From: Saccostrea cucullata
Lineage: Eukaryota
DNA length: 64,000 nt
Assembly: GCF_032062105.1 (NCBI RefSeq)
Contig: NW_026938747.1
Coordinates: 186,001-250,000, forward strand
Reading direction: 5' to 3'
Below, piece by piece: positions 1 through 6,000 of the stretch (within the stretch, counting starts at the first letter, position 1; each line of letters starts with the position of its first letter). A model generated the notes under the pieces. That model saw only the letters and a list, made by a program, of their open reading frames with translations. It was not told where the DNA came from and did not search any database. The translations under genes were made by a program, and so were the position numbers.

Positions 1-3000
1 TGAGGGGGCGTGTGAACTTTGACACAAATCGAGTCATTTTGGGTGGAATCAAAGACTTTATGGTGGAAATCAGAAGATGTCGAAGACTTCTATTTATAGC
101 TTGCGGGACGAGCTATCATAGTGCAGTGGCTGTGAGTTCTGGAAATTTAAATATGAAGATTTAATATAATTGTGATTACATTCCACTTATTTGTACAGAA
201 TCTTGAACTTTTCCATAAGTAAAATAATTTCTCTCATTCTTTTTTTGAAATCTGCCTTTAAATTATTTATTTATACAAAATTTTATTCACATAAAGTGAA
301 TGGGATTGGGCAGCAGGCAGAGCCTATTTTAGCCCTCCTCCTAAATTAAATTGTCATTGCAATATTAACGGAAGACCAGATAAATCTTAAGTAAAAGGAA
401 AAGTAACAATAATGTTTTGTTTATAATAAGAAACTCTCACAAATGATGAATGTTTTGTTTGCAGACAAGGCAGCTGATGGAAGAACTGACAGAACTTCCT
501 GTTGTGGTGGAGTTAGCGAGTGACTTCCTAGACAGACAAACGCCCGTATTCAGGGATGATGTCTGCTTCTTTATCAGCCAGTCAGGTATGAGGAAATCGC
601 TTACATACTGACAAATAAACAATGCAAACAGGTAAACAAAATGCATGCAGACAAGGTAGCATAGCATTTTCAGTCAGTTAGGTACAGATAGACAAAATAC
701 ATACAGACAAACAGACAAAGTAACATAGACTTCATCAACCAGTAAAGCACTGATAAACAAAGTGCATTCAAACAGACAGACAAGGTAAATCAAGACTGAA
801 ATAAGTCATTTCCAGCCATTTAGATAAGAACAAATAGTTGATAATCTTTGCATATATGTCTATAAGCTTTTCTTACACTGATCATTTTAAAGCTTACAGC
901 TTGTAGATGGGATGGTCATGCTATATGTTTTTTGTAGACTTAAAAATTATATGTCTTTGATATGTAATTTACTTTTCTACCTTTCGCAGGTGAGACAGCA
1001 GACACTCTGATGGCTCTGCGGTACTGTAAACAGCGGGGGGCATTGATTGTGGGAATCACAAACACAGTGGGCAGTAGTATTTGTCGTGAATCTCATTGTG
1101 GTGTACATATTAACGCTGGACCGGAAATCGGAGTGGCCAGTACAAAGGTATGTATCCAACTCCTGAAGGAACAACTGTAACTGAGAATTTCGTTGGTGCC
1201 CAGTTTTGATTTTTAGTATTTTGTTTTACAAATAATGAGGATTTTCTTCAAGTTGTGGATTACGTGCTTAATATAACAGTGTCAATGGCATTCATCTCTT
1301 CTTTCATTTATTCATAGATATTGATGATATAATCCTTTTGTTTATTTTAGGCCTACACCAGTCAGTTTATCTCCCTTGTGATGTTTGCTCTTGTAATGTG
1401 TGAGGACAGAATCTCAATGCAGGAAAGGAGGAATGAAATCATTCAGGGACTCAAAAACTTGCCAGGTAAGGGTTGGAATAGCCTGAGTGTAGAATTTGAC
1501 GTAAATGTAGTAAAAATGCTTATAAGGATGCACAAAAGTGTGTATTTATACTCTATTTAGAAAAATTTTTGTAAAATGAAAATTTTGTTGTGGAGCAAGG
1601 ATGCATTTATTTAAAATAATCAATTTAACACAATATAAAAAAAGATGCTAAATTATTATAAATGAACACGAATGTAGGCTTTGTAAAGAAATATGTATTT
1701 CTGTATTGATTTACTTTGGTTGTAGATCAAATTAAGGAGGTTCTGAAGACAGATGAACATGTTCACACCCTGGCCAGGGAGCTGTACCAACAGAAGAGTT
1801 TACTGGTGATGGGGAGGGGCTATAACTACGCCACATGTCTGGAGGGAGCTCTGGTGAGTACACAGTGTAAACTTCACAAAACACTTCATGATTTTGATAT
1901 AATTTTAAAGTTTACTTTCATGGATTGAATTCAGACAACTTTATCTCTTTTGTTTAACCAAGACAAAAAATACTGTACACATTTTTAAATTTTGGGGGTT
2001 TCCATATTTATTTAATACAGAAATTTGAATTTTTGGCACCAGTTTGAAAAGATACTTCATTTACCTGAAGACTAAGATTGTATATTCTCTGAGTTATCTC
2101 CCTCTTCCTGCCTTTAAAGACATTGTTAAACTCAACGATTCTTACACCCCTATAGTGGAAATTCAAATTTCTTTTGCACAGTATTAATAACAAAATTATG
2201 CTTCCAAATTTTCTCATTTACAAATCAATTTGTATTTTATGTTAATGAAATTAAATGAATGAGATAGAAAATTACATGTAACATACCCATTTACATTCAT
2301 TTGGTAGAAAATAAAAGAGTTGACCTACATGCACTCGGAGGGTATCCTAGCAGGAGAGCTGAAGCACGGCCCCCTGGCCCTGGTGGACAAAGCCATGCCG
2401 GTCATGATGGTCGTGACCAGGGACAAGGTCTACCCTGTAAGTATTGACCACTCCCCCAAACTGGTTGCCGAATAGAATATTTGCTATTGGTTTGCTCAGA
2501 TACTGGAATGATTAAGGCATTACATGTATCTTCTTTCATTAGGATTTTGAGATGTAGGACTTGAAATGTTTGCTTGGTATTAATTAAATGTTATTTATAC
2601 CAATAGAATTAAAGATTTGACAAACATTCTTTGTTTTTGTAGAAATGTATGAATGCTCTGCAGCAGGTCAAGGCCAGACATGTAAGTATTCTGGTTACCT
2701 TAGCAACCATTATCAATAGAAAAATATGAAAACTATGTACATGAAAAAGATTTTTTTTTATAAATTGTGAATGAAGTAAAATTTTGACTTTCTGAGATTT
2801 TTATTATAGAAATTATAGTCCATTGGATGTGTCGTTGCTTTGTGCCAGATCATTAACGAAAGTGTTATTTTTCACTAAGAAGGACTATACATTTACTGTA
2901 CAGTTATGTTTAATAACAAAATTTTACAGTGATTCCTTTTTCAGACAGTAGCCCTGCCATCAGGCTAGCACTACAGACCGCGAGCCTCTTGCCTGTTCTT

Positions 3001-6000
3001 CTTTATATAATGTAATGTCTGTATCTGTATGACTGTATATGCATGTTGTGATCCTGTTTGGCTTCCATTTCATTTCAGAGAAAAAGATTCATTCTTGTCT
3101 TTTTTTATTTTTGCAGAACACTGGTACTGAATTGCTGTTTTCTATTATGAAAATTAGTGATAAGGCCATAATAAATAAATTGCTGGATTCTCATCCGAAT
3201 TTTTTTTTAAATCGAGGCGGGCGGGCGGCTTTTATTTTATATTTTTATTTTTTTCAATTTTGCAGATTTTTTTTTGACCTGGTCAATCGGTGTAATTTTA
3301 TCTACAATACCCGAATAAAAGTCATAGTAAAGGTTCAATTATCTCTTACTTCACATCATCACCAATCTTTTTCAACCAATGATCCTTGTTTAAAATATAT
3401 ACGCATGTATTGCAGCAATAACCGTCATTTCAGCTGTCAAAATCATGTCGACTTTCGCGGGATTTAAAACAAAAGTAGAATGGTAGATGAATACCGATCC
3501 CGATCAGAATTAAGACGAAGAAAAACAGAAATAAAAAAAATCGAGGCGGGAGTATAAAATCGGGGCGGGCGGGGATGAGAATCTAGGAATATTTTTATTA
3601 TGGCCTAAAATACCATTTTTGAATTCAGATTTTTTTTAGCTTTAAGTAGACTGAAATTTTTTATGGGCCATCTAATACGGCTTATGAATTGCTTCTGGTA
3701 TAAATTGTATCTTTGATTTGGCTTCCTTCTTTCTGAATTGAATTTTTGATGCTGGAGAGACCAATAAGTCTTTTGCATAGTTTTTTTTCCATTAGCCTCC
3801 ATTCATAACAGTATAGTTCATTAACATTCAATTATAATAAACATTCAATTACTGCATGTATAGTAAACATGATCATGCACTTGTCATAAATTCCTGATGA
3901 ATTGGCTTCCAATTGTGTCCACAAAAAGCAATTATCATAGTTTCAGCCAATAGTTTCATCCCGAGCCTATTGAATTTTATTATATATATATATAATATAA
4001 ATTTTATTATATAAAATATAGATTATGGCATGAAGCCCAATGACACTATGTTTTTGATAATGTAGGAAGATAAGAATTAATTGATGTAGACTTTCATTAG
4101 AAATTGTCTTATTTCTCATTGTCAGTGTATATAGAATTTTTGTCCCAGTGGTATTATATATATAACTACTGTAACATGTCTTGTTAAGCATGTGCACTGT
4201 CAGACTAATTTGCATGTTGTCATGACAACCATGATTATTCATTGTAGGGTAATCCAATAGTATTAGGCAATACCGATGACAAAGAGACGCAACAACAAGC
4301 CAATAAGTTTATTGGTGTTCCGTCTACTATAGACTGCCTACAAGGCATCCTAACCATTATACCCATGCAGTTACTGTCCATGCATATCGCTCAGTTGAGA
4401 GGATGTGATGTAAGCCTGGTTAACACAGTGACCCACTGTAGAGATATCATAACCAGATTGCTGTTCTCTGCATGCTTAGAGTCTGTGTACTGTCTTGTAT
4501 ATACTCATTCTTCCTCTGTAGACCCTTTCTGTTTAACAAAATCTGTCTCATCATGCAAACTTTATTTTGAAAAAGCCACCCCCCCCCCAAAAAAAAACAA
4601 AAATCGTTCAAAAAAAGTTAACAAAATATTTGATTATCCGTATTTAGCAGTTTTTTCTGCAGTATGAAGTTTTGTTGAGATGAGACAGATTTTGTTTGTG
4701 TGTAGTGCTTGTCTAGTGTCAGCTGGCTACAAGGGGCAGTGCATGTGTAGTGAGTCCATATTTAACACCGTCTCAACCACTGGTATCCTTTTAGGGGCGC
4801 CCCGTTTTACTTTGTACCAAGGGAGACACAGAAACACAAAAGTATGCATATAATTATGTGGAGGTCCCCCAGACTGTAGATTGCCTTCAGGGGGTGCTCA
4901 CCGTTATCCCCATGCAGCTGCTCTCGTTCCATATAGCCGTACTGAGAGGATATGACGTAAGAGAAGTTACTGCATGTGTTCTGTTTTTTATCACCTTTCA
5001 GAATCTTAGGAAATTATGGCCAAAAATTTTCTGGGTATTTTTATAAGAAAGCTTTTTATTACTGAGCTTTTTTTCTATTATATTCTCTGATTTTCTGAGC
5101 TTATAAAGAAGATATTTGAGTATTTATAAAAGGATGAAGGAATTTGTGAAGTTGTTTTTAATATTATTTGCATTTTTCATTAGAAGCTATTTAATTTGTT
5201 TCTTACCATCTCTCCTTCTTCTCACAACATTTTTCTCTTTCCCTTCCACACATGCACATTTCACCAAATGTTTCTTTTTTATTATGGGTTAAGCTTAGAA
5301 ATGGTTTTACGTTACTTTATTCAGCTTACTTTTCTAATACATTACAAAGGTAACTTAAGTAATGATAGGCCCCTTGGTACCTATAGGGAGCTAGGTATAC
5401 ATGTATCATTAATCAGAGCTAGTACATACTGGGTTTAGCAGCTGTATGCCTACCCTGGTGCTTTATTGGTGATAGTGGGTGATGGAATTTAAAATTGGAT
5501 GAGGAATAATCCGAATTCTTCTTTAAAGGCAACTCAAAGCACTCATAAATTTTGTATTCCCTCAATAGCCAATATAATACAAAAGCACTGTGATATGAAC
5601 GAACATTAAGAAAATGGTTAACATGCAAGATTACATCTATTTGACAATTTAAGTATAGTCATAAATATATATATTTGAATTGTTGTTAATCTAATTAGGT
5701 GCTAGGCCATTATAAAATCCCATAAATCACATGTATTTTAAGAATTACATGTATGTTTTACAAGCACACATATCAATAATCAATGAGTGTTTTGTATTGA
5801 TGTGATATTAATTTTAACTTTATGATTTTATATTGTTCTCACACTCTTTCACTTACATGTACTATAGTGGGTTATTTATAAAGTAAACATGTTTGGACAA
5901 GACAAATATAATTCACACATTCATGTTCTTACTTAGGCATTTTGGATAACTAAATGTGCAGAGTGAATAAATCAAATTCGGTTTCCATAGGTTAATTTAT

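Follow-up and report, generated by a model that had tools for sequence, protein, structure and literature searches.

A conserved long-range intronic duplex that probably influences which of two putatively exclusive GFAT exons is used in Saccostrea cucullata

We analysed a 64,000-nucleotide stretch of the Saccostrea cucullata genome (contig NW_026938747.1, positions 186,001 to 250,000; hereafter the window), the first 6.7 kb of which carry, on the + strand, a GFAT gene's 3′ half, with the earlier exons upstream on the same contig. Two intronic segments of this gene, 1.7 kb from each other and one on either side of the alternative exon A, are complementary and can pair into a long-range duplex, here called stem I. 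Our favoured reading, to which we assign a probability of about 0.68, is that stem I is a selected pre-mRNA duplex biasing the choice between exon A and the following, presumably mutually exclusive exon B. GFAT is the hexosamine pathway's rate-limiting enzyme, and control of exclusive exons by RNA pairing has been documented mainly in arthropods and in a few human genes. Stem I is probably an instance of a splicing mechanism that is already known, here in a gene and an animal group new to it; a literature search returned no mollusc case of such pairing and no account of the GFAT exon pair, and priority is uncertain.

Results

Two single-copy intronic arms form stem I

An initial annotation of the window had proposed two complementary intronic arms with about 27 of 31 positions paired, including perfect blocks of 6 and 9 bp, and both arms are present where it placed them (Table 1). 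RNAduplex recovers both blocks and, with an energy of −36.0 kcal/mol (the unit of all energies below), pairs 27/31 positions in the 5′ arm. The same annotation had described the 5′ arm as a GC-richer island, the 3′ arm as lying ~65 nt upstream of exon B, and both as lying outside repeats. All three descriptions hold: the 5′ arm has 58% GC against ~33% for the region, the 3′ arm ends at 4730 with exon B starting at 4795, and each arm region occurs only once in the genome, which led us to reject an origin of the arms as repeat fragments. Rfam covariance models gave no match at either arm. Nowhere else on the + strand of the 64-kb window is there a partner for the 5′ arm as good as the 3′ arm, at −36.0 against −29.1 for the next.

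Conservation can be followed in a diverged relative, locus L078, which covers the gene from the constitutive exon U1 to past exon B. Third codon positions of the two loci are 65–72% identical and intron 1 is unalignable; within this background, each arm holds an identical stretch, of 16 nt in the 5′ arm and 18 nt in the 3′ arm, a shared match of at least 16 nt arising in 3/300 shuffles. Conservation of the arms, which the initial annotation had named as a check, is borne out in L078 by two unchanged cores. These cores are complementary to one another over 9 bp, a U-U mismatch and a further 4 bp, and their pairing is the best of 78 between conserved elements (−18.2, next −9.1), with p = 0.0006 under mononucleotide shuffling and p = 0.028 under dinucleotide shuffling.

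The flanks of the cores differ between the two species and lengthen the helix in both (p = 0.012 and 0.013 against shuffled flanks). They can be aligned only by hand; because that alignment was fitted to the structure, the up to four two-sided changes that it contains were left uncounted. Locus L007, which holds the 3′ arm only, carries four substitutions in it, three at unpaired positions and one changing A-U to G-U (p = 0.014). Loci L080–L083 end before the 5′ arm, and L084 ends before exon A.

The energy of the duplex was compared with that of the best intron 1 × intron 2 duplex in each of 400 dinucleotide shuffles made in 60-nt blocks. This check, also suggested at the outset, came out in favour of stem I in the window, where 4/400 shuffles reach the observed energy, and went against it in L078, where 35/400 do. 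Since the pairing was singled out post hoc, the result of 4/400 is suggestive and not decisive, and since shuffles match the energy in both species, we treat duplex energy alone as moderate evidence and conservation as the stronger. When the local contexts of the arms were co-folded, the core formed with pair probabilities of 0.85–1.0, and a net energy of about −11 remained after opening costs in both species.

Judged from these comparisons of sequence, stem I is probably functional, a real splicing-regulatory pairing. The initial proposal was that the pairing places exon A in a loop and draws exon B towards the upstream donor, and it is supported by the invariant complementary cores together with a geometry like that of stem I in the Drosophila gene serpent (srp), discussed below. 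We infer that stem I forms in vivo and that its effect is in favour of exon B. It would form while the A–B intron is being transcribed, placing exon A in the loop; the U1 donor and the exon B acceptor would then be ~330 nt apart instead of ~2.1 kb, favouring B. A local stem may compact the A–B intron and stack on stem I, and Rbfox-type proteins, perhaps with a second long-range stem favouring A, could tip the balance between A and B by tissue.

Two further elements of intron 1, at 3026–3041 (16 nt) and 3053–3064 (12 nt), are shared exactly with L078, with no pairing partner found for either. The 16-mer lies after the 5′ arm in the window and before it in L078.

A covarying local stem and two tentative helices

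The strongest covariation evidence at the locus comes from a local 18-bp stem that ends immediately 5′ of the 3′ arm of stem I. Compared with L078 without gaps, this stem has five pairs changed on both sides, two changed on one side only and two broken, and 13/18 of its pairs are kept in L006 and 14/18 in L007.

A candidate stem II pairs a segment just after the exon A donor with one inside a downstream conserved element. It has 9 bp in the window and 7 bp in L078, where it lies in the same register, ranks top and includes one C-G to A-U change; in L007 it is not favoured. If real, for which we judge the odds to be somewhat below even, stem II would loop out exon B. We rate lower a putative donor-masking helix between the exon B donor and a conserved intron element (5186–5206). 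This pairing reaches −14 to −18 in four close species, ranking first in three and third in the window, and such energies are also reached by chance in distant loci.

Other pairings were discarded. The segment 5415–5455, the second partner of the 3′ arm (−28), was rejected as a competing selector, having no matching place in L078 or L007, and the pairings of 4735–4748 with 4188–4201 or 5246–5257 proved to be near-palindromes of UGCAUG that are not kept in relatives.

Table 1 Features of the GFAT locus in the window
Feature	Positions	Strand	Remarks
Constitutive exon U2	2308–2436	+	43 codons; L078 encodes an identical peptide
Constitutive exon U1	2643–2681	+	39 nt; supplies the upstream donor in the A/B choice
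Pyrimidine run closing with CAG, immediately before the 5′ arm	2930–2944	+	10-mer shared with L078; may form a further helix with the G-run that follows the 3′ arm, or act as a cryptic acceptor
Stem I (long-range duplex), 5′ arm	2948–2978	+	Core 2962–2977 identical in L078 and L079
MITE-like insertion	3163–3606	.	34-nt inverted ends; inside the loop, outside the arms; 1219 candidates, best copies 94–99% identical
UGCAUG at −36 and conserved exon A acceptor region	4211–4247	+	Kept in L078 and L007; UGCAUG similarly placed in L017 and L009
Alternative exon A	4248–4409	+	Derived type; 162 nt, phase 0
Candidate stem II, 5′ arm	4428–4439	+	Tentative; just after the exon A donor
UGCAUG after exon A (+61)	4469–4474	+	Kept in all four close species
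Local 18-bp stem, 5′ arm	4535–4552	+	In the A–B intron; perfect pairing with 4679–4696
Local stem, 3′ arm	4679–4696	+	Ends 1 nt before the stem I 3′ arm
Stem I, 3′ arm	4698–4730	+	Core 4697–4714 identical in L078, nearly so in L006 and L007
UGCAUG at −54 before exon B	4740–4745	+	Between stem I and the branch-point region; GCAUG in L078
Branch-point-like TAACA	4761–4767	+	Conserved; putative; ~350 nt from the exon A donor
Alternative exon B	4795–4956	+	Ancestral type; 162 nt, phase 0
UGCAUG after exon B (+16)	4971–4976	+	Five loci have it at +13 to +16, two others at +31 to +45
Conserved intron element	5186–5206	+	Tentative; complement of the exon B donor (8–10 bp) or acceptor-like decoy
Candidate stem II, 3′ arm	5472–5483	+	Tentative; inside an element conserved in L078 and L007
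Last coding exon	6647–6691	+	Follows exons A and B

Exons A and B are an ancient tandem pair

Exons A and B are equal in length and phase, have intact AG/GT splice sites and share 62% nucleotide identity. They are the sole two matches to the exon in the 1.17-Gb genome, GFAT is single copy, and the alignment match of exon B is residues 620–673 of the human GFAT-1 crystal construct. We infer that splicing of the two exons is mutually exclusive. The reading frame is preserved whether both are skipped or both are included, so nonsense-mediated decay would not explain their exclusion; nor would steric hindrance, because the predicted exon B branch point lies ~350 nt from the exon A donor. Among the proteins retrieved, there was no spliced A-type protein. 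The word shares obtained from RNA runs (0.08–0.15) are uninformative on A or B, because the high-copy miniature inverted-repeat transposable element (MITE) of the stem I loop could give ~0.09 by itself.

An exon-by-exon search found the A-then-B tandem in nine further invertebrate loci among the contigs examined: three in close relatives (L006, L007 and L078; exon identity 85–88%) and six in distant ones (L008, L009, L011, L012, L017 and L085). In a midpoint-rooted tree of 27 peptides and 54 columns, from which L006 was omitted since its exon A is incomplete, one clade (support 100/97) unites the A exons with the single A-type exon of L005, apart from the B exons and the other single-copy exons. 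A and B differ without exception at four positions in nine species, namely exon positions 2 (N/E in A, R in B), 45 (M, F), 49 (E/Q, V) and 53 (C, Y/F). B is the ancestral exon type and A the derived one, and the pair is ancient, much older than the stem I duplex. With two conserved, predicted isoforms of a rate-limiting enzyme that differ at four fixed residues, these data suggest a control point that has gone unrecognised.

Single exons also occur: L005 has an A-type exon only (5337–5498) and L010 a B-type exon only (8234–8395), a pattern suggesting that some lineages lost the one exon and some the other. Duplication at this gene extends to exon U2, of which the distant locus L012 has two copies (300–428 and 1549–1677), possibly a further exclusive pair. 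In L084, exon U2 is followed by a tandem array of ~13 degenerate copies, of which many contain a stop codon (10040–12132).

UGCAUG motifs flank both exons

UGCAUG is the binding site of Rbfox proteins, which usually repress an exon from upstream and activate it from downstream. The motif, as (U)GCAUG, is present in all four flanks of exons A and B in the window, L078 and L007, and in 3/3 available flanks in L006, against a background of 0.14–0.37 GCAUG per 150 nt. Its positions hardly differ among the close relatives, and several distant loci also carry it, either after B or before A. These sites probably give Rbfox-type tissue control of the A/B choice, presumably through Rbfox binding.

Discussion

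Weighing stem I against other explanations

Several observations count against a role of stem I in exon choice. The core alone has a net energy near zero (−1.9 and −0.7), stem I is absent from global minimum-energy folds of 1.9–2.7 kb, and the energy of the L078 duplex lies within the shuffle range (35/400). Covariation, which the initial annotation had looked to as support, was sought in the core and was not found there, the core being invariant. Both arms are known from two species only, and arms swapped between these species pair about equally well (−35.6 and −30.3, against −36.0 and −31.6). Finally, the core is absent from six distant loci that keep the exon pair, and since the pair persists there, the duplex is not required for it generally; a tiled scan of the distant loci gave composition-driven duplexes only.

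An invariant core would also suit sequence-specific binding, and the cores could be single-stranded protein sites whose complementarity is incidental, with Rbfox-type factors alone choosing between A and B. Intron elements with no partner are conserved too, UGCAUG is kept in more of the distant loci than the duplex, and the core pairing reaches only p = 0.028 with dinucleotide shuffling. What such sites leave unaccounted for is that the two longest conserved elements flanking exon A, splice sites aside, are complementary to each other, that their flanks extend the helix in two species and that the changes in L007 avoid paired positions; we therefore consider this explanation unlikely. About as improbable, or slightly more so, is a duplex that forms and does not steer the choice, instead compacting the introns, positioning Rbfox sites as an RNA bridge or aiding splicing of the U1 intron. 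Such a role would fit both the UGCAUG situated 10 nt from the 3′ arm and the negative result for a competing selector, but stem I encloses exactly one alternative exon and ends 65 nt from the acceptor of the other, as in srp.

The pyrimidine run and CAG that precede the 5′ arm in both species raise another reading, in which a cryptic poison or decoy exon (acceptor 2944) begins with the arm, serves GFAT feedback and is masked by pairing. Such an exon would be in frame with U1 and reach a stop after 7 codons in the window and 3 in L078. However, no conserved donor follows downstream, the distance from CAG to core differs between the two species, and the pyrimidine run can itself pair with the G-run after the 3′ arm, leaving this reading very improbable. 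Least credible is a chance complementarity of two GC-richer islands that have no function: although shuffles match the energy in 1% and 9% of cases, and distant loci reach equal or lower energies from composition alone, chance leaves unexplained why the cores are identical when the introns around them cannot be aligned, and it is largely refuted by conservation. A selected duplex that biases the A/B choice remains our preferred interpretation.

Comparison with known systems

The closest parallel to stem I is the exon 4.1/4.2 pair of srp, in which stem I promotes the downstream exon, as established by disruptive and compensatory mutation (PMC4691838). In both genes the alternative exons are in tandem, an element in the upstream intron pairs between the exons and loops out the first of them, the structure is young and clade-limited, and a second stem may lie in pseudoknot order (PMC4691838). 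The srp stems are both conserved and proven by mutation, whereas candidate stem II of GFAT is weak (PMC4691838). GFAT also differs in having an exon pair far older than its duplex, together with UGCAUG sites and a local stem that covaries. With stem II no more than a tentative candidate, GFAT cannot be placed firmly in the srp-type bidirectional class.

The initial annotation had likened the 5′ arm to a Dscam-type docking site with competing selectors, a comparison that did not hold up: the best partner of the arm scores −37.7 and the next, at −22.9, lies inside exon B, with none before exon A. GFAT shares with Dscam1 exon 6 and 14-3-3 the long-range intronic complementarity beside tandem duplicated exons (PMC6071210, PMC4691838), but in GFAT there is no second selector for the 5′ arm and no conserved one for the 3′ arm. 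Human ATE1 likewise encodes an enzyme and has a cluster of two exons, 7a/7b, at which several helices, local and long-range, act together; there, two elements compete for one, and such competition was not found in GFAT (PMC7797038).

Alternative splicing of GFAT with Rbfox involvement has been described for mammalian GFPT1 exon 9, which is a 54-nt cassette restricted to mammalian muscle and not homologous to A/B (PMC10514471); the A/B system, in contrast, has two presumably exclusive 162-nt exons that would swap the end of the isomerase domain. Exons 6a/6e of coq-2 are another alternative pair in a metabolic enzyme that is common to molluscs and annelids, with the difference that function has been demonstrated for coq-2, and RNA structure appears there only in a reference (PMC7434440).

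The combination of an old exon pair and a young duplex bears on whether such structures arise with exon duplication (PMC6071210) or later. A fuller scenario can be drawn in which stem I, favouring B, is opposed by stem II and the donor-masking helix, favouring A, in a bidirectional switch tuned by Rbfox and added late to an early-lophotrochozoan exon pair that yields two differently regulated enzymes. As a whole this scenario is less likely than not; if true, it would be, to our knowledge, the first such system in a mollusc, and would show that an RNA structure can be acquired long after the exons were duplicated. As a two-exon system of 2 kb, the locus is tractable in a minigene.

Repeats and other observations

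The MITE-like insertion in the stem I loop has no match in L078. It is young and lengthens the loop by 440 nt, but the element folds on itself. Downstream, a 34-bp near-perfect hairpin at 6165–6249 belongs to a short palindromic repeat family of at least 40 copies; it was rejected as an Rfam microRNA, its matches falling below the gathering score and the hairpin being a repeat. The clustering of P0286, a 613-aa protein, with a 50-aa GFAT fragment is an artefact, as the protein has no GFAT similarity by eye; to the eye it resembles a phage terminase.

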